Source: Octopus bimaculoides (lineage: Eukaryota). From it: DNA of 39,860 bases. The translations under genes and the position numbers were made by a program. The notes below the pieces were generated by a model that was given only the letters and a program-made list of their open reading frames with translations, had not been told where the DNA came from and made no database searches. The stretch covers positions 10,948,254 through 10,988,113 of the forward strand of contig NC_068991.1 in assembly GCF_001194135.2 (NCBI RefSeq), written 5' to 3'. Positions 1 to 31,447 of this stretch are shown piece after piece (the stretch's first letter is position 1; the number at the start of each line of letters is the position of its first letter).

Positions 1-147
1 ATATATATATATATATATATACACATACATATATATATGTATATGCATAAATATAACATTTGGAATTTTTTGTGATAAATAATTATTTTGCTCAATATGT
101 TTAAAATATATGTCTAACTGTGTTTTTCGTTTTCTTTTCAATTACAG

Positions 148-362
148 GTAGTGTATCACGCCGATTATACTCCGAAGGAGAAGATTCTAGCGTTTCACCA
201 CGCCAAGATCCACTGCCAGATTTGGTACCAGTACCACGGGACAGAGCGCACTCATTACCTGAGGTGCCTCTTCGTCGGCATGAACACATCCGTGCGATTG
301 GACAGGAACTTCGGAGAATTAGTGACGAGTATTACCAGAATCGTCACCATTCACACCACCAA
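148..362 (+). CDS. Internal coding exon of a BH3-only pro-apoptotic protein (BAD/BIM-like); gene incomplete in window
   Basis: Polypyrimidine tract plus TTACAG acceptor ends at 147; CAA|GTAAGT consensus donor at 363 (phase 1 in, phase 0 out). Open frame SVSRRLYSEG...RDRAHSLPEVPLRRHEHIRAIGQELRRISDEYYQNRHHSHHQ. IGQELRRISDEY (297-332) fits the BH3 pattern h-small-xx-L-xx-h-(G/S)-D-x-h (BIM IAQELRRIGDEF, BAD YGRELRRMSDEF). RDRAHSLP (237-260) fits RxRxxS and RxxSxP. Confidence 0.82.
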
Positions 363-2181
363 GTAAGTAGATGGAATATGCATGTCACTGCAAACTTGGT
401 CAATTTCAGTCTCACCTGCAGACTTTCAGCTAATTTCACTCTGATTTTGGTAATTGGAAATAACAATTAGTGCCAGCTAATTTACTACCTGTGATACCTT
501 TTTTCTAAACATAGAACGGAATGGAAATTAAAGGGAATTAAAAGAAAATTGGAGTGAAATCAAAGTTAAAACTAAATATAATAGATAATATCGGTGAAGA
601 ATAAGGAAATACCAAATGGCCAGAAGTCTTTCAAATATAATATTTGAATGCTAGAAATTGGCTCCATTTCTGAAAGTCCATTACAGTTTTGCTTTGGTGA
701 AATCCTTCACAGAGATGTTAATGAAACTTGTGTACAAAGAATTGAAGAAATTCTGGCTAAGACCCACTATCGTATGTCACGTGGAATTGCCAAAGCATTC
801 TTTGTGTCAGTTTCCAACTGTGTGTGTTACAGTTGTGCATTCATTGACTTTCTAAAGGCGGTCCCAGACAAGAAAGACTTTCTGCTACATGTTTCATGCG
901 GAATAGTAGCAGTGAATAGTCTCTGTTTACTGACAGCGGCACCGTGTATGCTGTGGCATAACCCTGACCTTTGGAAACTTCTGAAGGCTGAGAAAATCAG
1001 TCCTTGATTAATGTGATTCCGTAACTTCAGTTGTGATTCTGTTCCATTGGCGTTTAAAGAAAAATAAAACGATGGAGTTATCATTCCTGCTGCTATTTTT
1101 GGTAATGCCAGCCAACTCTATTGAAGCATTCCTATTGCACAAAGCTAACCTATTGAATGTTTTAGTGGGTGATCAACTCTACAAATTGAACATGTCAAGG
1201 GTGAGGTCGACTTTTAGACCTTTGATCCCTCTGTCAAATACATATATTACTTACCATACCTCTACTGGTGTTCTAATTCTTCAACCATAACAACATTTTG
1301 GAATTCAGAACATCTCTATGAGTTTATATCTAATATGATCTCCAGAGTTCAGCAACTAATTTTTACCGTTTTGCCTTAGGAAAAACATGGAATCAATTGG
1401 AAAATGCTCTTATTCATGATTCGATGAAACAATTCTTTTGAACAAAACAAGATTAATTGGTTTCTCAAGAAACTATCAGTCTGATGAAGAAGCAAAAAGA
1501 AAAGGAACTCTAAACAGTTTCAAAAACATTTTTCTTAACTTTTCCTTTTGGAAAATGCGTGATATTAATTAAGACTTTTTGTTATTTTTCTTTTATATTT
1601 TTTTTTAAATATAAATTTTATCTGAAAATAAATTAAATTCAAAATAAACTAACTAAAAACATTGTTTCAGACTCTTTTTACTAGTCATTAGTTTATAAGT
1701 TTACTCCTACATTTCATAACCCACCCACCCCGCATTCCTTTAAAATGGTTCACAGATCTCTTCAATGAGAATTTGCATAAATAGCAAATAAACAGGAGAA
1801 ACCAAATAAAATCTATTTGAAGGATGTTCTTATCCAGTTCTTCTAAAGAAAAAAACAAACAAACAAAAAACTGTACGGTTAACACACACACAAGTATTTG
1901 AAGTGGTTTTTGCCGTAGCCTTAAATTACAGGGTTTTGTTAAAGGGGACTCTTCTATACTTTATTTAGGGTCAGAGAAGGTCAGTGTTTAGGTACACAGA
2001 ATTAGTAGACACATGATGTTAAACAGATGAAATGATACTCCACTGGGATAGGAAGCTAGTCACGGAAACATAACAATTTGAACTGATTAAAGTACAAAAG
2101 ATGCTTTCTCTCTACAACACCATTGTCTCTCTTTTTCTCCCTCTTTCTCTTCCTCTCCCTCTCTATGTCTCTCTCTCTCTC

Positions 2182-2251
<70 letters not shown>

Positions 2252-2509
2252 NNNNNNNNNNNNNNNNNNNNNNNNNNNNNNNNNNNNNNNNNNNNNNNNN
2301 NNNNNNNNNNNNNNNNNNNNNNNNNNNNNNNNNNNNNNNNNNNNNNNNNNNNNNNNNNNNNNNNNNNNNNNNNNNNNNNNNNNNNNNNNNNNNNNNNNNN
2401 NNNNNNNNNNNNNNNNNNNNNNNNNNNNNNNNNNNNNNNNNNNNNNNNNNNNNNNNNNNNNNNNNNNNNNNNNNNNNNNNNNNNNNNNNNNNNNNNNNNN
2501 NNNNNNNNN

Positions 2510-2553
<44 letters not shown>

Positions 2554-2759
2554 CTCTCTCTTACAGCACCACTCTTGCTCTCTATCCCACTCTCTCTCTC
2601 TCAATTTCTCTTCTCTTTCTTCTCCTCCCCCTCTTGCTGCAGGCTCACAGGCAGGCTGACTGTAAGAAAGACTTAGTTTGCAGTAAATGCATATAATTGG
2701 TTAAACTAGCTGTAGCCCATCCATAAAAGAAACTTTTCCAAATGCTTAGCTGCTCAATG

Positions 2760-3370
2760 GACATAGTTGATAGCTTCTGTTACCTTGGTGACCAAAACTG
2801 AAGTGAATGAAGGCACTCCAAAAGTATAGTGAGCCAGAGTATGAGTGAGCTGGAAAAAGGTCAGAGAGCTATTGCTTCTACTGAGTGTGAGTGAAGAGTG
2901 GAGGGTATGATTTAAGCGTTATGAAGTGCTCTGTTGCATGGGTTGTAAAATACGAGCACTTAATGCAGAGGCAGGAAAGATGGGAAGAAATGAAGCAAGC
3001 ATGTTGCACTCAATATGTAATGTTAGTGAGCATGGATGATAAAAAGTTAAATGAGCTGAGAGATAAATTAGATATAAGAAGGGAGATGTTGTATGCAAGT
3101 GGGAATACTTTTGGTTGTATGGTTATGTGTTGTGTATGGAGGATGACAGTTGCCTAAAGAGGTGCCAAGTAACACAAGTTGAAGGGACCTGGAAGTGGAA
3201 GACCGGAGAAGACATGGGCTGAAGGATGGCAACTGATCTCCAGGCTGTTGTCACTCCTTTTGGCCAATAATCTCAAGAAGCTGTTATTAAGGGCTACAAG
3301 ATGAAGAACTACAAGTGGCAAGATGCTATGCTAAAGAACTCTCAGCCAACCTCTGCGAGAATGGTAAAAA
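2760..3370 (+). mobile_element. Decayed RTE-clade LINE, 3' part of ORF (RT end and C-terminal region), frameshifted and internally deleted
   Basis: Recognisable peptide blocks across frames: DIVDSFCYLGDQ (2760-2795, RT FxYLG motif), WKKVRELL, RNEASMLHSICNVS, WLYGYVLCMEDDSCLKRCQVTQVEG and GSGRPEKTW. These match the RTE C-terminal pattern (LRWxGHVxRM...GRGRPRKTW) from memory. Confidence 0.8.
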
Positions 3371-3967
3371 CATGAACTTGATGGTGATAGCGATGATAAT
3401 TATGATGGTGGTGATGACAGTACTGATGATGCTTGTGATGATGGTGATGACAGTAGTGTTTGTGGTGATGGTGGTGGTGGTGGTAGTGGTGGTGTTTGTG
3501 ATGGTGGTGGTGGTAGTAGTAGTGGTGTTTGTGGTGGTAGTGGTAGTGGTGATTGTGATGGTGGTGGTGATGGTGTCAAGATGGTTGTAATTGTGCTAAT
3601 GATAATTAATCTTGAATGTTAGTGAAGGTGATGTCAGCAAAATCGATTGTGCTGGCGCTTGTGATAATAGTGGTGATGATGATGATGATGATGTTGATGG
3701 TGATAAGGATGATGATGAGAATGATGTTGGTATAAAAAAAAAAATGATTACATATTATAAAATCACCAGTTTAAGAAAGACAAGAGTAACAAAAATCCTC
3801 TGAGAGAAATTGAACCATGTATCTGTCAGTTACTTGGGTGACCACTCAGATAAAAATATCATTGCAGCAGCTTATTTGTCTATAATCCCATCAAATTGTT
3901 GTTCATTTGCCTTTTTTGCCTTCTCAAGCGCCAATAAATCCTGTACATACATACATCATAACATATA

Positions 3968-4257
3968 CATCATCGTCGTTTAACGTCCGCTTTCCATGCT
4001 AGCATGGGTTGGACGATTTGACTGAGGACTGGCGAACCAGATGGCTGCACCAGGCTCCAATCTGATCTGGCAGAGTTTCTACAGCTGGATGCCCTTCCTA
4101 ACGCCAACCACTCCAAGAGTGTAGTGGGTGCTTTTTATGTGCCACCGGCACGAAGGCCAGTCTGGCGGTACTGGCAACGGCCACGCTCAAATGGTGTTTT
4201 TACATGCCACCTGCACAGACAGGAGTCAGTCCAGCGGCGCTGGCAACGACCTCGTTC

Positions 4258-4258
<1 letters not shown>
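3968..4258 (-). mobile_element. Non-autonomous retroposon with RTE-like 3' tail, minus copy
   Basis: Reverse complement closely matches 31155-31447, including GTTGGCGTTAGGAAGGGCATCCAGC and the end CATGCTAGCATGGAAAGCGGACGTTAAACGACGATG; (CAT)n tail on the left. Confidence 0.8.
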
Positions 4259-4319
<61 letters not shown>

Positions 4320-4321
<2 letters not shown>

Positions 4322-4556
4322 AGATCAAAATCACAATCAGAGTCTCAATCAACTTGAAACCAAAAATGGAAATTGTAGTTGTGGCCGATGCCAGTGCCAC
4401 CTGGCTGGTTCCCTGTGCCGCTGACATGTAAAAAGCACCATCTTCACAGATTAGATTGGAGTCAGGTGCAGCCTCCTGGCTTGCCAGTCCCCAGTCAAAC
4501 CGTCCTACCCATGCCAGCATGGAAAACGGGCATTAAACGATGATGATGATGATGAT
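4320..4556 (+). mobile_element. Same RTE-tail family, plus copy with internal deletion
   Basis: Contains GCCAGTGCC...GTAAAAAGCACC and ends CAAACCGTCCTACCCATGCCAGCATGGAAAACGGGCATTAAACGATGATGATG. Confidence 0.75.
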
Positions 4557-4751
4557 ATATATATTTATGTGTATATATGTATATTTTTGGTCATGTTTAT
4601 TTTTATCTTAGTGGTCATTCATTTATTAATGTTTTATTTCTGTACCTTTGAATTAAATTTGTGTTATCATCTTAATTATTCAATTTCAGATTTATACATT
4701 ATTTACATTATTTACATTTGACAGATATTTGCCCTCATCTTGTTTGTTGTT

Positions 4752-4797
4752 AACACAACTTTTCAGCTGATATACTCTCCAGCCTTCATCAGGTGTC
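4752..4797 (-). ncRNA. Second minimal hammerhead motif in the inverted arm
   Basis: Minus strand reads GACAC-CTGATGA-A-GGCTGG-AGAGTATA-TCAGCT-GAAAA-GTT-GTGTT; GAAAC has become GAAAA in this copy. Confidence 0.72.
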
Positions 4798-4876
4798 TTG
4801 GGGGAAATTTCGAACCTGGGTTCTCATTCCTAAGGCTTTTTCGATGTTATTATCATTATTATTATTATTATTCAGG

Positions 4877-4945
4877 GCATATCGCATAGTGGTTAAGAAC
4901 ATGGGCTACTAACCCCAAGATTCCGTGTTCAATTCCAGGCAGTGA
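4877..4945 (+). promoter_or_regulatory. tRNA-derived (Ser-like) SINE head with Pol III A and B boxes
   Basis: A-box-like TCGCATAGTGGT (about 4882-4893), anticodon-like arm GGG-CT-ACT-AA-CCC (4903-4915), B box GTTCAATTCC (4927-4936). The acceptor stem does not pair, so it is not a functional tRNA. Confidence 0.7.
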
Positions 4946-4992
<47 letters not shown>

Positions 4993-5040
4993 TTGGAAAA
5001 ATACCTTACGAATGAGAACCCAGGCTTGAAATTTCTCCAA

Positions 5041-5086
5041 AACACCTGATGAAGGCTGGAGGGTATATCAGCTGAAACATTGTGTT
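5041..5086 (+). ncRNA. Minimal type I hammerhead ribozyme motif (Penelope-like, dimer type)
   Basis: Stem I AACAC/GTGTT; core CTGATGA (5046-5052); stem II GGCTGG/TCAGCT; GAAAC (5074-5078); ATT as NUH triplet before the 3' strand of stem I. Stem III has no loop. The G of the palindromic AACGTT is an A in this copy. Confidence 0.75.
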
Positions 5087-5496
5087 AACAACAAACAAAA
5101 TGAAGACAAATATCCGTCAAATGTAAATAATGTAAATAACGTAAATAATGTACATAATTCCTCATCTCTTAAATATAGGACTGTATTATTCAGATTTATA
5201 ATTCAGTACCAGAATATTACTGGTACTAGCACTTCATTGACTTGAGAAACATTTTGCTTTTCTCTCTACCTTTCTGCAAGGTTTAACTGTTTTATTGCTG
5301 CAGCTAAGATGCAGTTTTATTTGATGTGTTGCTCCAGCTGGCATTAGTGGGCACTGTCATCTGAGAGTATACTGATACCCTCTCTTGATCAGCCTGTCCC
5401 ATGGTGCAATTTTAGTCAATTCAGAGTGAGTGTGGGTGTATGTGTGTGTGTGTGTGAGAGAGAGAGAGAGCTAGATGAAGAGAAAGAGAAGAATTG

Positions 5497-6293
5497 ATCT
5501 TAGAAGGATAAAAAGTAGGGTTGACCTCAGCAAGATTTGAACTCAGGGACCAGATGGCCAGATCCAGTACAACAAAGCATTCACGCCAATGTTCTGAAAA
5601 CTCTGCCAGTTTACAGAACTCAGGACTGTTGCTTAATGGCAACAACGACAACAGCAACAACAACAACAAAAACAAAGACACTGATGTCGGTTTCAAATTT
5701 TGGCACAAGGCCAACATAGTTAGAGGTGATAGGGCTAGTCAATCATATTGACCCCCCCCAGTGCTCGACTGGTACTTATTTTATCGACCCTGAGGGGATG
5801 AAAGGCAATGATGACCCTGGTGGAATTTGAACTCAGAGTGTAAAGATGGGCAAAATACCACCAAGCATTTTGTCTAGCATGCTACCAATTGTGCCACTGA
5901 CTGATTACAATAATAATAATGATAATGATAATTGTCTTAAATTTTGGTATGAGGCCAGCAGTTTTAAGGGGTCAGTTCATTACACTGACCCCTGTATTTA
6001 ACAAGCATGAGGAAGGGAAATATTAAAATGATGATGATGATGATGATGATGAGAATCTTCTGCACAGGGTTACATTCATTTCTACACTAGGCACAAGGCC
6101 TGAAATTTTTTGGGGAGGTTGAGACCAGTTGATTAGATCGACTCCAGTATGAAACTGGTACTTAATTTATCGATCCCGGAAGGATGAAAAGCAAAGTCGA
6201 CCTTGGCGGAATTTGAACTCGGAACATAAAAACAGATGAAATACCGCTAAGCTTTTTCGCCCGGTGTGCTACCGGTTCTGCCAGCCCACCGCC
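5497..6293 (-). mobile_element. Cluster of about four tRNA-derived SINE copies (about 5497-5620, 5690-5903, 5930-6000 partial, 6076-6293)
   Basis: Minus strand has B-box GAGTTCAAATT/TC, central block TTTGCCTTTCATCC...GGTCGATAAA..AAGTACCAG and tail GGCCTTGTGCC, the same as plus copies at 32072 and 34433-35303. Confidence 0.8.
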
Positions 6294-7182
6294 TTTGCAT
6301 AGGGGAACATTAAAACAATGACATCGATGACGTTGATGATGATGAAGATGATGATAGGCTTCTACACAGTTTCCATGCATCAAATTCCACTCATAAAATA
6401 AAAAAACATTGGTTAACCTACAGCTAAAAACAGCTAAAAATAAAAAAAAACAAAACCAGAAGGCACTCATCCAGATTACCCTGCTGTGGGTTTCAAAACT
6501 GAAAATCCCACAAATGGCTATGGAACGAAATTCTTATCAGAACAACCATTTCAAAAACAAAATATTATTTTTTCTTCCAACATTATTTGTCTTTGGTTTG
6601 CTCTTTCCCCCACCCCCTTAGCAGGTGGTGTTTATATTTGGCTTCAAGGGTTGGAGTGCGATGTATAGTTTTTGAATATTTTGTCTTGGTGGGGTTGTTT
6701 GTTCATTCCCTACCCCCTCCATACTCCTCTCATCCAAATTTTTTCCCCCAGCTTCGTTCCTTTCTCATTTACTTTCCTTCTTTCTTTCTTTCTTTCTTTT
6801 CTTCCTCCCCCCCCTCTCTCTCTCTGTTTATTTGCCTTACAACCAGCCCCCTCACACTCGTCTCTTATCTCTCAGTCAATCCGCTTCCAGCTTCTTATTG
6901 CGAAAGTGTTGGCTAGNNNNNNNNNNNNNNNNNNNNNNNNNNNNNNNNNNNNNNNNNNNNNNNNNNNNNNNNNNNNNNNNNNNNNNNNNNNNNNNNNNNN
7001 NNNNNNNNNNNNNNNNNNNNNNNNNNNNNNNNNNNNNNNNNNNNNNNNNNNNNNNNNNNNNNNNNNTGATGGGACAGCTCCCATTGTTTGTGACTATTCT
7101 GCAGTCCTGTCCGTCCTTCTGTCCGTTTGCTTGTGTATTTGTCTCACAATGATTGTCTGAATGCCTTCTTAGATTAATGATG

Positions 7183-7227
<45 letters not shown>

Positions 7228-7485
7228 CCATGATGATGATGATGATGATGATAATTATGATGATGATGATGATGGTGATGATGATAGCATATAGTTTTGG
7301 CAGTAGTGAGAATGATGGTAGTGATGATGATGATGATGGTAATGGTGGTGGCGGAGTTGACTGTGGTGATGATGATGGTGATGATGATGGTTATGGTAAT
7401 GATTATGATGGTGGTGGTGATGATGATGATGACGACAATGATGATGATTATGATGACGATGATGATGATGATTATGGTGGTGGTA
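7183..7485. repeat. (GAT/GGT)n compound microsatellite
   Basis: Direct inspection. Confidence 0.95.
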
Positions 7486-8861
7486 GTTACGACTGGGGTG
7501 ATGTGCTGACAATGCTGACGAGAGGGGACGACGTTAAAAGGTGGCATTGGCAGCGATAGGGACTTCTCCCTTCGTAACCCATCCGTCCGTCTGTCTGTCT
7601 GTCTGTCTGTCTGTCTGAATGTCACCCCTTTCGTTTGTGATGACGACGACGACGATGACGATGGTGGTGGTGGTGGTGACAATGCATGGCTGTCAAACGC
7701 GTGGTGTGCTGAGGCTTGCACCATGCTACTGCCAGTATGCGGCAGGCGGGCAGTGCAGTACGGTGCAATGTGGTGTGATGCACAATGGAATGGTGAGATG
7801 CATGGAAGGGTGGCGCCGTGTCGTAAGTCTTGGAATGGATTCCCTGTCTAACCTCATCTCCACCTGTATGTCTGTGTGCGAATGTGTATGTGTGTCTTTA
7901 TATATATATGTGTGTGTTTATGTGTGGGTGTGAGTGCGCATGTGTCTGCATATCTGTGTACATGTGCATATCTTCATGCATGTGAGTGTGTAGGTTTGTG
8001 TGTGGGTTTGTTTGTGTGTGTGTGTGTGTGTGTATGAGTTGGTATGTGTCTGTATGTTTATATGCATGTTCACATCTGTCACTCTGTGTATGTATGTGTG
8101 TGTGTGTGTGTGTGTTTCTCTACATCTGTTTGTGTCTGTGTATCTGCCTATACACGTACACATACACACACACGTACACACGCATACATATGTGTGTGTG
8201 TATGTGGATGATTGTCTCTGTACGAATGTCTCTGCGTCTGTCTATGTGTGTGCGTTTGTGTGTGTGGATGTTTGTCTCTGTACGNNNNNNNNNNNNNNNN
8301 NNNNNNNNNNNNNNNNNNNNNNNNNNNNNNNNNNNNNNNNNNNNNNNNNNNNNNNNNNNNNNNNNNNNNNNNNNNNNNNNNNNNNNNNNNNNNNNNNNNN
8401 NNNNNNNNNNNNNNNNNNNNNNNNNNNNNNNNNNNNNNNNNNNNNNNNNNNNNNNNNNNNNNNNNNNNNNNNNNNNNNNNNNNNNNNNNNNNNNNNNNNN
8501 NNNNNNNNNNNNNNNNNNNNNNNNNNNNNNNNNNNNNNNNNNNNNNNNNNNNNNNNNNNNNNNNNNNNNNNNNNNNNNNNNNNNNNNNNNNNNNNNNNNN
8601 NNNNNNNNNNNNNNNNNNNNNNNNNNNNNNNNNNNNNNNNNNNNNNNNNNNNNNNNNNNNNNNNNNNNNNNNNCTTCATCACTTCCCCCGCCCTACCACC
8701 ACCACTATCTGACTTTCTCTTGCTGTGTGCCCCTCCCCCCACCATTGCAACAGCACTCTTCCCCCTCCCACCTCTTCAACCCTTGCCATTCTTCTCCCTG
8801 CCTCTCTCTCTCATTGTTCCTTTCTCCCCTTCCACTTCACCTATTTCCATCTTTTCTTTCT

Positions 8862-11765: not shown

Positions 11766-12215
11766 CTTTACACTTTTACTTGTTTCAGTCATTTGACTGC
11801 GGCCATGCTGGAGCACTGCCTTTAGTCGAGAAAATCGATCCCAGGACTTATTCTTTGTANNNNNNNNNNTGGAGCACTGCCTTTAGTCGAGAAAATCGAC
11901 CCCAGGACTTATTCTTTGTAAGCCTAGTACTTATTCTATCGGTCTCTTTTGCCGAACCGCTAAGTTACGGGGACGTAAACACACCACCATCGGTTGTGAA
12001 GCGATGTTGGGGGGACAAACACAGATACACAAACACACACAGAGACACATATGTATATATACATATATACGACAGGCTTCTTTCAGTTTCCGTCTCCCAA
12101 ATCCACTCACAAGGCTTTGGTCGGCCTGAGGCTATAGTAGAAGACACTTGCCCAAGGTGTCATGCAGTGGGACTGAACCCTGAACTGTGTGGTTGGTAAA
12201 CGAGCTACTTACCAC
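11766..12215 (-). mobile_element. Near full-length tRNA-derived SINE with CORE-like domain, internal microsatellite and distinct 3' body
   Basis: Minus strand: GGTAAGTAGCTCGTTTACCAACC...GGTTCAGTCCCACTGC, GGCACCTTGGGCAAGTGTC (like the MIR/CORE GACCTTGGGCAAGT), TA/CA repeat, then a body matching 18362-18555. Confidence 0.8.
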
Positions 12216-16822: not shown

Positions 16823-17395
16823 TTCATAGATAGTTAGATGGATAAATTGATAGATAAATTGATATATATGGATGGATGGATAGATAGACATAGACAGAGA
16901 GAGATAGAGGGAGAGAAAGAGAGAGAGAGAGAAAATAGGAAAGTTGATTGGTTGGGATAGAGTTATAAGGAATATTTCCAGACATAAACAACAATAATTG
17001 GTATTTTGCCATTATGCAGGAATTTGGTTTACCTCAGGAATTTTTCATCACAGACACACGTACACAAAGACACACACACACACACACACACAGAGGCAAA
17101 GACGCACACACAGACACACATAAATTCAACTCACAGAAACTCACACACACACATATACAAACGGGCAAAGACGCACACACAGACACGTGTACACACAGAC
17201 GTAGACAGACAGACACTCACAGACGTAGACAGACAGACAGACGCATAGTTCTCTTCATCAAATATGAGTCAGCACAAAAGTTTTCCCTTCTTGTTTTTCT
17301 GTTCGATTTTCCTTCCGATTGTTGTTGTGATTGCCGTTATAGTGCTTGCTCTTGTTGTCGTCGTCGGACATTCTATTAACGCACACATGTCCAGC

Positions 17396-17717: not shown

Positions 17718-17880
17718 GGCGCAGGAATGGCTGTGTGGTAAGTAGCTTGCTTACCAACCACATGGTTCCAGGTTCAGTCCCACTGCGTGGCACCTTGGGC
17801 AAGTGTCTTCTACCATAGCCTCGGGCCGACCAAAGCCTTGTGAGTGGATTTGGGAGACGGAAACTGAAAGAAGCCTGTCG
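17718..17880 (+). mobile_element. SINE head plus CORE-like domain, plus strand
   Basis: Nearly identical reverse complement of 12060-12210 (GTGGTAAGTAGCTTGCTTACCAACC...GGTTCAGTCCCACTGCGTGGCACCTTGGGCAAGTGTCTTCTAC...GAAAGAAGCCTGTC). Confidence 0.85.
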
Positions 17881-19148: not shown

Positions 19149-20150
19149 TGAGGATTATGTATATATATATATATATNNNNNNNNNNNNNNNNNNNNNNNN
19201 NNNNNNNNNNNNNNNNNNNNNNNNNNNNNNNNNNNNNNNNNNNNNNNNNNNNNNNNNNNNNNNNNNNNNNNNNNNNNNNNNNNNNNNNNNNNNNNNNNNN
19301 NNNNNNNNNNNNNNNNNNNNNNNNNNNNNNNNNNNNNNNNNNNNNNNNNNNNNNNNNNNNNNNNNNNNNNNNNNNNNNNNNNNNNNNNNNNNNNNNNNNN
19401 NNNNNNNNNNNNNNNNNNNNNNNNNNNNNNNNNNNNNNNNNNNNNNNNNNNNNNNNNNNNNNNNNNNNNNNNNNNNNNNNNNNNNNNNNNNNNNNNNNNN
19501 NNNNNNNNNNNNNNNNNNNNNNNNNNNNNNNNNNNNNNNNNNNNNNNNNNNNNNNNNNNNNNNNNNNNNNNNNNNNNNNNNNNNNNNNNNNNNNNNNNNN
19601 NNNNNNNNNNNNNNNNNNNNNNNNNNNNNNNNNNNNNNNNNNNNNNNNNNNNNNNNNNNNNNNNNNNNNNNNNNNNNNNNNNNNNNNNNNNNNNNNNNNN
19701 NNNNNNNNNNNNNNNNNNNNNNNNNNNNNNNNNNNNNNNNNNNNNNNNNNNNNNNNNNNNNNNNNNNNNNNNNNNNNNNNNNNNNNNNNNNNNNNNNNNN
19801 NNNNNNNNNNNNNNNNNNNNNNNNNNNNNNNNNNNNNNNNNNNNNNNNNNNNNNNNNNNNNNNNNNNNNNNNNNNNNNNNNNNNNNNNNNNNNNNNNNNN
19901 NNNNNNNNNNNNNNNNNNNNNNNNNNNNNNNNNNNNNNNNNNNNNNNNNNNNNNNNNNNNNNNNNNNNNNNNNNNNNNNNNNNNNNNNNNNNNNNNNNNN
20001 NNNNNNNNNNNNNNNNNNNNNNNNNNNNNNNNNNNNNNNNNNNNNNNNNNNNNNNNNNNNNNNNNNNNNNNNNNNNNNNNNNNNNNNNNNNNNNNNNNNN
20101 NNNNNNNNNNNNNNNNNNNNNNNNNNNNNNNNNNNNNNNNNNNNNNNNNC

Positions 20151-20240
20151 CAAGACTTATTGAGGATCTTGTTTCACCAGCAGACTTCCAGTGAAGATGA
20201 GGAACCGAGAGATGAACCGCCTCCCTCGACACCACCTTAA
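20151..20240 (+). CDS. Candidate terminal coding exon (5' end hidden in gap): QDLLRILFHQQTSSEDEEPRDEPPPSTPP*
   Basis: GC-richer, non-repetitive open frame starting right at the gap edge and ending at TAA 20238-20240, followed by UTR-like AT-rich sequence. No acceptor is visible because of the N gap. Absent from the ORF track because there is no start codon. Confidence 0.33.
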   Translation, partial: QDLLRILFHQQTSSEDEEPRDEPPPSTPP

Positions 20241-31077: not shown

Positions 31078-31447
31078 GCGAAAGCGAAATCGTTATGACA
31101 GCTGTGGCCAGCATCGCCTTCCTGGCACTTGTTCCAGTGGCACATGTAAAGACATTCGAGCGAGATCGTTGCCAGTGCCGCCGAACTGGCTCCTGTGCAG
31201 GTGGCACGTAAAATACACCATTTCGAGCGTGGCCGTTGCCAGTACCGCCTGACTGGCCCTCGTGCCGGTGGCACGTTAAAGCACCCACTACACTCTCGGA
31301 GTGGTTGGCGTTGGGAAGGGCATCCAGCTGTAGAAACTCAGCCAAATCAGATTGGAGCCTGGTGTAGCCATCTGGTTTCACCAGTCCTCAGTCAAATCAT
31401 CCAACCCATGCTAGCATGGAAAGCAGACATTAAACGACGATGATGAC
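31078..31447 (+). mobile_element. RTE-tail retroposon, most complete copy, with about 67-nt internal tandem units
   Basis: TTCGAGCG recurs at 31155 and 31222; GTGGCAC..TAAA recurs three times; ends GACATTAAACGACGATGATG. Confidence 0.8.

Follow-up and report, generated by a model that had tools for sequence, protein, structure and literature searches.

Here we describe a coding exon of the gene LOC106874024 in a window of 39,860 nucleotides of genomic DNA from Octopus bimaculoides (NCBI RefSeq assembly GCF_001194135.2, contig NC_068991.1, forward-strand positions 10,948,254 to 10,988,113); the window is this whole stretch, and coordinates below count from its first letter. An initial annotation, made from the letters alone, had read positions 148-362 as a cleanly spliced exon of a BH3-only death protein from a probable cephalopod, with phosphorylation sites arranged as in BAD. 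The exon belongs to a family found in lophotrochozoans and ambulacrarians, whose members appear to be of the BH3-only type and to combine motifs of BIM, BMF and BAD.

The exon at 148-362 and its gene

The coding exon of LOC106874024 at 148-362 (forward strand) carries a putative regulatory region and the BH3. It is entered in phase 1 and left in phase 0, and from base 150 (frame 3) it comprises 71 sense codons with no stop (SVSRRLYSEGEDSSVSPRQDPLPDLVPVPRDRAHSLPEVPLRRHEHIRAIGQELRRISDEYYQNRHHSHHQ). The 3' end of the upstream intron, at 121-147 on the same strand, shows a pyrimidine-rich tract and an AG acceptor at 146-147, and a GTAAGT donor at 363-368 directly follows the exon. A profile search matched the exon peptide to RefSeq XP_014777070.2 of O. 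bimaculoides with 100% identity and 100% coverage, which turns the suspected cephalopod origin into an exact species match. The 5' junction is consistent with this protein, which reads ...SSTG before it and SVSRRL after it. The upstream coding exon or exons lie beyond the window, in which LOC106874024 extends from 148 to at least 20240.

The same exon was recognized in other molluscs. A gastropod-like genomic contig (L001) contains a homologous exon with identical intron phases (5' phase 1, 3' phase 0) and an AG at the matching position, and the gene of Argonauta hians has a homologous exon at the matching position with identical AG and GTAAGT signals. Furthermore, Logan contigs of 1.6-2.2 kb encode cephalopod-like proteins of 447-516 amino acids (P0023, P0068-70) that run uninterrupted across both exon junctions; since the octopod locus spans tens of kb, contigs this short are most simply explained as spliced transcripts. 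The splice signals, the RefSeq identity and the gastropod phases bear out the clean splicing proposed in the initial annotation, and its three peptides, RRLYS, RDRAHSLP and IRAIGQELRRISDEYY, are all encoded in the exon frame. The exon at 148-362 is the penultimate coding exon of LOC106874024 and forms part of the last exon in an isoform that leaves the donor unused. Frame 1 is also free of stops over 71 codons (VVYHADYTPKEK...); it is without homologues or support from conservation, and we take it as chance.

The nearest named relative is the A. hians protein GAB1609605.1 (702 amino acids, "hypothetical protein"). Its genomic locus contains three coding exons, namely a large first exon, the homologue of 148-362, and a last exon about 10.5 kb beyond. 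Between the octopus and Argonauta exons, 31 codon differences are synonymous and 9 change the amino acid, a split with a binomial P of ~5e-12 under a neutral expectation of 1:3. The exon is 76% identical to its Argonauta counterpart, whereas the upstream intron is only ~52% identical. The exon at 148-362 is under purifying selection.

A family of uncharacterized proteins with conserved motifs

When a two-sequence profile of the exon was compared with 1.84 billion cluster representatives, 64 proteins reached E<=1e-3, and 20 reached E<=1e-10. The members that could be named belong to gastropods (Haliotis, Lottia, Aplysia, Physella, Lymnaea, Babylonia and Batillaria), bivalves (Mytilus, Mya and Tegillarca), a cephalopod (Argonauta), a brachiopod (Lingula), an annelid (Owenia) and a sea cucumber (Apostichopus). 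Every one of these relatives has a product name of the "uncharacterized" or "hypothetical" kind. Among the matches found here, one detected gene per species seems usual, and the species are lophotrochozoans and ambulacrarians. Profile searches were needed for this result, as a single-sequence search with the exon in a set of 5.8 billion proteins gave one relative only. A search with the full-length alignment, in which only 8000 candidates were scored, was dominated by low-complexity word matches and did not reach vertebrate BIM or BAD; it was this search that brought up the O. bimaculoides RefSeq entry.

Motif conservation was counted in 45 non-redundant exon segments from several phyla, in which conserved positions contrast with variable linkers. 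The first conserved element of the exon, site A, is RRLYS in the octopus (159-173, forward strand, as are all motifs of the exon). The family motif is R-x-R-x-x-S-[ED], with the Arg at -3 in 43/45 segments, the Ser in 41/45 and the following Glu or Asp in 40/45. Cephalopods keep the Arg at -3 and have no Arg at -5; the two octopus arginines stand at -3 and -4. Next comes PLPDLVP at 210-230 (PLPDxVP in the family), in which the Leu is kept in 42/45, the following Pro in 42/45, the Asp in 44/45 and the final Pro in 38/45. Site B, RDRAHSLP at 237-260, corresponds to R-x-R-x-x-S-x-P, which is both the consensus of basophilic (AKT-type) kinases and the mode-1 form of 14-3-3 sites. Its family form is R-[DE]-R-S-x-S-[LA]-P, with Arg at -5 in 43/45, Arg at -3 in 45/45, Ser in 44/45 (one segment has Thr) and Pro at +2 in 43/45.

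The BH3 itself, IRAIGQELRRISDEYY, lies at 288-335; its hydrophobic positions are I50, L54, I57 and Y61 of the exon peptide, D59 is invariant, and S58 stands in an RRxS context. In the family form V-G-R-E-L-R-R-I-S-D-E-F, the Gly is present in 44/45 segments, the Leu and Arg in 45/45, and Ile, Leu or Met at the third hydrophobic position in 45/45. The residue before the Asp is Ser in 41/45 and Gly in 4/45, the Asp is found in 45/45, and the Phe is found in 42/45 (Tyr in 3/45). The octopus exon retains all family motifs except the full site A. Across these phyla the three serines pointed out in the initial annotation, their upstream arginines and the +2 proline are conserved in 41-45 of the 45 relatives, which supports its reading, and the putative kinase-site and LC8-type motifs are as conserved as the BH3 itself.

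A BH3 in a protein without a Bcl-2 fold

The octopus sequence IRAIGQELRRISDEY exactly fits the BH3 pattern h1-x3-L-x2-h3-[G/A/S]-D-x-h4, and the peptide of the exon that spans the BH3 is EVPLRRHEHIRAIGQELRRISDEYYQNRHH. With the exon alone, the sole Pfam match was PF08945 (Bclx_interact, the BH3 of BIM), at E=0.0036 and 17.6 bits against a gathering cut-off of 25 bits. Among 30 family members, PF10514 (Bcl-2_BAD) matched 21 at E<=1 (best E=6.4e-6) and PF08945 matched 20 (best 8.7e-6), all below the cut-offs, in agreement with the mixture of BAD and BIM features that had been noticed in the octopus exon. Scores of the BAD model were 13.9-22 bits among the ten relatives listed, and the best relatives scored 24.4-24.7 bits with the BIM BH3 model.

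In a search of the PDB (177,635 distinct sequences) with the profile of the 45 exon segments, groove-binding BH3 peptides filled essentially all top places. BAD peptides led (1g5j_B, 5.7e-6; 2bzw_B, 1.8e-5) and were followed by BIM (1pq1_B, 2.2e-5, and many more), PUMA (2roc_B, 2.6e-3), BIK (0.09) and BMF (0.3-0.7). The BH3 claimed at the outset is a canonical one (I-x3-L-x2-I-S-D-x-Y), and its family profile matches BAD, BIM and PUMA peptides. The family profile was informative; when the exon sequence by itself was run against the PDB with phmmer, the outcome was just one chance match to a ribosomal protein. AlphaFold2 (AF2), run on the family exon alignment, predicted a single helix over residues 42-71 of the exon peptide with predicted local distance difference test (pLDDT) values of 84-97, the remainder being coil at ~60.

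The Bcl-2 fold (PF00452; BH1, BH2 and BH4) had no match at E<=1 in the proteins of O. bimaculoides and Argonauta or in 29 full-length relatives. A multi-domain Bcl-2 protein with BH1 and BH2, named beforehand as the outcome that would speak against a BH3-only protein, was therefore not what we found. Taken together, the LOC106874024 protein is, to judge from its sequence, of the BH3-only type.

Full-length architecture and upstream motifs

The expectation of a short, BAD-like protein did not hold. The RefSeq proteins have 533-553 amino acids and that of Argonauta has 702, they carry upstream motifs of the BIM/BMF type, and lengths across the full-length relatives range from 278 to 832 amino acids. 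Full proteins are probably mostly disordered, given their low-complexity sequence; the AF2 model covers the exon only. Their elements follow a common order, namely an N-terminal RDSGY-x-TD-x-SPA...FTFD, an acidic stretch, S-x-P-I-x-I-x-RP-x-AP, FRPI..R..[GAS]-T-Q-T-P, the content of the exon and, in most lineages, an SFPG....W..LR tail. T-Q-T occurs in at least 90% of the 29 full-length proteins. In O. bimaculoides the corresponding elements are SFDSSYATDDSPSN (the SGY..SPA region) and RRTIGTQTYP, both upstream of the window, and the TQT-bearing peptide is ELRRTIGTQTYPMF. BIM (DKSTQTP) and BMF (DKATQTL) bind dynein light chain (LC8) through an x-TQT-x motif, and the upstream TQT of the family is a candidate LC8 motif of this type.

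The full-length family alignment was also compared by hhalign with human BAD, BIM and BMF, whose sequences were entered by hand, so that the values serve as leads and not as database facts. The alignment with BAD (P=3.9e-9) covered RGRSRSAP, the BH3 and the Trp-containing tail. That with BIM (P=1.3e-8) placed STQTPSPPCQ on GTQTP...CQ and, after a gap over the phosphosite region, continued through the BH3. With BMF (P=1.7e-5), 123 columns were collinear, pairing R-P..TQT, RLFYGNAG with RLRxxSEGE, PLPASFP with PLPDxVP, the BH3 and the Trp-containing tail. Next, the sequences were truncated ahead of the BH3 and their scores set against those of 100 shuffles. BIM retained 30.1 against 11.2+/-1.8 for the shuffles, none of which reached it (0/100; z ~10), and BMF retained 18.1 against 10.7+/-2.0 (0/100). 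A greedy alignment of the exon segments to the same hand-entered BAD sequence paired site A with IRSRHSS, site B with FRGRSRSAP and the BH3 serine with RRMSDEF, in the same order and with similar spacing; the pairing of site A with IRSRHSS is the low-confidence part of this alignment.

Gene models and C-termini

RefSeq describes two isoforms of LOC106874024. Isoform X2 (XP_014777070.2, 533 amino acids) is named "transcription factor mef2A-like", whereas the first RefSeq version called the gene product "uncharacterized protein LOC106874024". Neither isoform matched a MADS/SRF-TF or MEF2 domain of Pfam at E<=1. Runs of Q, H, N and D are abundant in the protein, and in view of these low-complexity runs and of the missing MADS domain the mef2A-like name is probably a composition artefact.

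Isoform X1 (XP_052827458.1, 553 amino acids) reads through the donor at 362/363 to a TAG at 468-470, within an open reading frame (ORF) at 120-470. Its read-through tail, VSRWNMHVTANLVNFSLTCRLSANFTLILVIGNNN (363-470, forward strand), is supported by the RefSeq model and by conservation in Argonauta, where 93 of 108 nt (86%) are identical, above the 76% of the exon, over 35 codons in frame with the stop at the same position. Eight codon differences are synonymous and six are non-synonymous (P ~0.01), and the other frames contain stops. After the TAG, identity to Argonauta falls to 57% and then to 35%. This segment looks like a conserved alternative C-terminus created by the unused donor, or else an element that controls splicing. 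Its only hydrophobic part is a short run, FTLILVIG.

Isoform X2 instead ends in a short alternative last exon at 1380-1427 (forward strand), known from the RefSeq model, which adds a tail of 15 residues (EKHGINWKMLLFMIR) and stops at TGA 1425-1427. It is preceded by a good acceptor (...ttgccttag). A blastn search with this exon found no counterpart in the Argonauta locus, and its significance is therefore doubtful; it could be confined to this species, or else be a splice form that is minor or spurious.

The conserved last coding exon is used by neither O. bimaculoides isoform. Its 3' part, QDLLRILFHQQTSSEDEEPRDEPPPSTPP, lies at 20151-20240 on the forward strand with a TAA stop at 20238-20240, and was located by a tblastn search with the Argonauta C-terminus (...FSFPGANRIHDLLRILFQQ...PPPSTPP), which matches 20151-20237 at E=1.8e-10; the DNA also aligns with the last exon of Argonauta. 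Only the final 29 codons and the stop are present in the window. An assembly gap, the N run at 19177-20149, removes the 5' part, so that half of the exon is missing, at least from this copy of the assembly; at the corresponding place Argonauta has ...QHGQQSGLAFSFPGANRIH. Both Argonauta and a third cephalopod-like transcript have the C-terminus ...FSFPGANRI.DLLRILF...PPPSTPP. Its absence from the RefSeq models is plausibly owing to the gap. The conserved last exon (...DLLRILFHQQTSSEDEE...) is not hydrophobic.

A tblastn search of the window with a gastropod last exon gave no match; the cephalopod last exon differs. Babylonia, Batillaria and their relatives among the caenogastropods (L001, positions 872-1048; P0012, P0014, P0016, P0017, P0019 and P0086) have a different last exon, ...AALHAELNGVAAFFLTGVRRF.YRNFAGYFRHVFNWTRR..., more hydrophobic or amphipathic than the SFPG...W..LR tail found elsewhere. 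The family therefore has no uniform C-terminal module.

Surrounding sequence and gene neighbourhood

The window is AT-rich with many microsatellites and contains 20 N runs totalling 6898 bases (17%); (AT)n, (GA)n or (CA)n repeats border many of these runs. Long apparent ORFs and repeats that cross N runs are artefacts, and a whole-window repeat search returned mostly artefacts of N runs and microsatellites. A search for Rfam families found none. Short interspersed repeats lie at 12070-12159 and 17784-17880, in opposite orientation, and at 3961-4123 and 31295-31446. Several copies of each, and no fewer than five of the first pair, occur in the Argonauta locus with 80-95% identity, so that these repeat families are common to both octopods, and they yield spurious ORF and tblastn matches. 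Inside the 19.8-kb intron, two blocks at 1624-1703 and ~16945-17050 are ~78-81% identical to Argonauta and collinear with it; because they have stops in all six frames, we regard them as conserved non-coding elements.

In the loci of Lottia (positions 1-8530), Lingula (1-8579) and Owenia (1-4605), the BH3 gene stands head-to-head with a gene for a large protein kinase of 1248-1957 amino acids. This DYRK/HIPK-like kinase is the sole neighbour within 10 kb in the three species, and the kinase domain of Lottia is closest to DYRK2 and HIPK2 (E ~1e-35). The microsynteny of the kinase and the BH3 gene is conserved across a mollusc, a brachiopod and an annelid. As the kinase could not be matched to any known neighbour of human BCL2L11, BMF or BAD, microsynteny does not settle orthology.

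Discussion

BH3-only proteins are usually described as polyphyletic and mostly vertebrate. With BLAST searches that started from human Bim, Bad and Bmf, Banjara et al. (2022; PMC8998228) reported possible BH3-only proteins from echinoderms and considered them "potentially present in Lophotrochozoa". The legend of their Fig. 5 names O. bimaculoides, Lottia, Crassostrea, Mizuhopecten, Lingula and Capitella, and their sea-urchin and starfish proteins are long (350-373 amino acids) and disordered, with the BH3 on a single exon. Their 118-residue Stichopus/Apostichopus sequence matches our family member BSL78_20638 in length and species, and the potential BH3-only proteins of that study are the same family as LOC106874024. 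The octopus gene itself had probably been included there as a candidate. The suggestion in the initial annotation that the gene might be unannotated in molluscs was thus mistaken, as gene models exist under 'uncharacterized' names, here under a wrong one, and the 2022 study lists an O. bimaculoides candidate. That study aligns the BH3 region only and makes no mention (0 occurrences) of phosphorylation, 14-3-3 or dynein light chain, and a paper on molluscs of the same month states that none of the BH3-only proteins had so far been identified in these animals (PMC8917759). In the open-access literature we found neither a functional study nor a proposal of a common BIM/BMF/BAD ancestor with these motifs. 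The new element here is that the regulatory architecture is conserved, and this suggests a single ancestral gene of the BIM/BMF/BAD type.

We think it likely that LOC106874024 encodes a long protein of the BH3-only type from a mosaic BIM/BMF/BAD family, in which a BH3 helix in the C-terminal part would act as a groove-binding pro-apoptotic ligand under the control of kinases, 14-3-3 and possibly LC8. The BIM/BMF side of the mosaic consists of SGY..SPA and TQT, and the BAD side of RxRxxS, RxRSxSxP and the serine of RRIS-DEF. In the mechanism that we propose, the BH3 helix would occupy the groove of pro-survival Bcl-2 proteins, perhaps also that of Bax or Bak, and thereby promote mitochondrial apoptosis. 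Molluscs have Bak, Bax and Bok as well as several pro-survival Bcl-2 proteins (PMC11463336). The sequence RDRAHS-LP fits both RxRxxS and R-x-x-pS-x-P, and RRIS-D fits RRxS. Phosphorylation by survival kinases at RDRAHS-LP could create a docking site for 14-3-3, phosphorylation of the RRIS-D serine could block groove binding directly, as in BAD, and TQT might sequester the protein on LC8, as in BIM and BMF; when the kinase/14-3-3 inputs, and possibly that of LC8, fall, the ligand would be released to engage the grooves of Bcl-2-family proteins. AKT, RSK and PKA phosphorylate two RxRxxS-type sites of BAD, leading to 14-3-3 binding, and phosphorylation of the BH3 serine of BAD by PKA blocks its binding to Bcl-xL. 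TQT tethers BIM and BMF to dynein or myosin light chains. For the octopus protein, we infer the binding partners, the kinases and the killing activity from such sequence parallels.

Several points weigh against this reading. Every match to PF10514 and PF08945 stays below the gathering cut-offs of Pfam (28.2 bits for BAD, 25 bits for BIM), PF10514 had no match to the octopus exon alone at E<=10, and Bim_N (PF06773) had none at E<=1 in the family or in the octopus proteins. Site A is degenerate in cephalopods (RRLYS, no Arg at -5), and TQT and SGY..SPA lie outside the window and were seen in the RefSeq and Argonauta proteins only. The comparison with human proteins depends on sequences entered by hand, and with the BH3 removed BAD scored 14.9 against 10.4+/-1.9, an 8-column motif that 3 of the 100 shuffles reached. 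BH3-like motifs are also found in non-apoptotic proteins, and convergence can produce short linear motifs of the RxRxxS or TQT kind. Finally, the literature searched holds no binding, phosphorylation or killing data for any family member.

Two of the alternatives deserve closer consideration. The gene could be the cephalopod orthologue of BAD specifically, with BIM and BMF having other invertebrate counterparts or none and the BIM-like motifs being coincidental. The BH3 of BAD is indeed the best PDB match of the exon profile, Bcl-2_BAD is the Pfam family matched by most members (21/30), the three serines are collinear with the regulatory serines of BAD, the Ser before the Asp is a BAD hallmark, and BAD had the lowest hhalign P of the three human proteins (3.9e-9). 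Yet once the BH3 was removed, BIM around TQT was strongest (0/100) and BAD weak (3/100), BMF is collinear over 123 columns, and the proteins are 3-4 times longer than BAD, which is not known to have a TQT; nor did the search matches from these species include any obvious separate BIM-like or BMF-like family. We consider a BAD orthologue in this strict sense unlikely. Slightly more doubtful still is that the BH3-like and kinase-site-like stretches are short linear motifs in a disordered scaffold whose main role lies outside Bcl-2 apoptosis, for example in LC8/14-3-3 signalling or metabolism. The sub-threshold Pfam scores, the long proteins rich in low-complexity sequence and the lack of functional data on the family in the literature searched would all suit a scaffold, and BAD has non-apoptotic roles in metabolism. 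Against it, twelve consecutive residues (G-x-ELRR-x-SDEF) match BAD/BIM almost exactly, the four hydrophobic positions and the Asp vary little or not at all between phyla, the top places in the PDB search were taken essentially only by groove-binding BH3 peptides, and the family shares further collinear motifs with BIM, BMF and BAD. The Bcl-2, Bax, Bak and Bok partners of such a ligand are also present in molluscs (PMC11463336).

The remaining alternatives can be dealt with briefly. A MEF2-type transcription factor has in its favour the RefSeq product name only, and both the earlier name and the 'uncharacterized' label of all orthologues speak against it, as does the lack of any MADS/SRF-TF/MEF2 domain at E<=1 in either isoform. 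We regard it as very improbable and rejected it for want of a MADS/MEF2 domain. A chance ORF in non-coding DNA, flanked by accidental splice-like signals, might be suspected because the 215 bases are free of stops in two of their three forward frames and the window is repeat-rich and 17% N. The exact match to a RefSeq protein, the 64 cluster representatives of the family, the 31 against 9 codon differences to Argonauta and the same intron phases in a gastropod make this hardly conceivable, and on the conservation data we rejected it as well. The long, mosaic BH3-only-type protein described above thus remains our preferred reading.

A further proposal is more tentative, and we rate its chances as somewhat short of even. 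A single pre-vertebrate gene, which molluscs, brachiopods, annelids and echinoderms seem to retain as one detected copy, may be the common ancestor of BIM, BMF and BAD, and perhaps of PUMA, and may already have combined TQT, two AKT/14-3-3-type sites and the PKA-type serine of the BH3 with the BH3 itself. If so, the control of BH3-only proteins by survival kinases and dynein would be older than the separation of protostomes and deuterostomes, and each vertebrate paralogue would have kept a subset of it. Human 2q13, 15q15, 11q13 and 19q13 are usually counted as one paralogon set of the whole-genome duplications (WGD), with BUB1/BUB1B, PLCB2/PLCB3, MERTK/TYRO3/AXL and EHD1-4 nearby. We take the human BIM, BMF and BAD genes, and perhaps that of PUMA, to lie in these paralogons, an arrangement that would fit a single ancestor.

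The result matters in several respects. A well-conserved gene of the BIM/BAD/BMF type is present across lophotrochozoans and ambulacrarians under 'uncharacterized' or 'mef2A-like' names. It offers a concrete way to test what triggers mitochondrial apoptosis in molluscs, and it bears on the question of a single BIM/BMF/BAD ancestor. At the level of annotation, the RefSeq product name is corrected, and a conserved C-terminus of the octopus protein is seen to be absent from the RefSeq models.

Comparison with BAD, BIM, BMF and PUMA

Vertebrate BAD resembles the family most closely in the BH3, where the core G-R/Q-ELRR-x-SDEF hardly differs and the RRxS context places a Ser ahead of the invariant Asp in both. 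Both have two upstream basophilic serine sites in collinear positions, the family motif RxRSxSxP having the form of the BAD 14-3-3 site RSRSAP, and many family members share with BAD a Trp-containing C-terminal region after the BH3. BAD is, however, a small protein of about 170-200 amino acids, whereas the family proteins are 3-4 times longer and contain SGY..SPA and TQT, neither of which is known from BAD. In addition, the Pfam BAD score of the family stays under the cut-off, and site A of cephalopods has no Arg at -5.

With BIM, the family shares the BH3 sequence I-x-QELRRI-x-DE[FY]. The family motif [GAS]TQTP..CQ aligns with STQTPSPPCQ of BIM, and this is significant even without the BH3; Y.TD.SPA of the family also resembles FDTDRSPAP of BIM. 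Unlike BIM, 41 of the 45 family members have Ser instead of Gly before the Asp, and a family insert of 40-60 residues with the two BAD-like phosphosites and PLPDxVP separates TQT from the BH3. No C-terminal hydrophobic helix like that of BIM is apparent in the conserved last exon. BMF differs in that its BH3 is much less similar (PDB E 0.3-0.7) and that the BMF sequence used here has no serines at sites A and B. PUMA (BBC3) has a BH3 of a similar type, IGxQLRRMxDD, forms the third group of PDB matches and is matched weakly through PF15826 in 2/30 members (E 0.17 for the octopus protein); its matches are much weaker than those of BAD and BIM, and no common upstream motifs were seen. The family falls under the Pfam thresholds of both BAD and BIM, and it is not to be called an orthologue of either alone. 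Its features outside the BH3 appear to be shared most securely with BIM and BMF, and its BH3 and phosphosite pattern seem closest to those of BAD.

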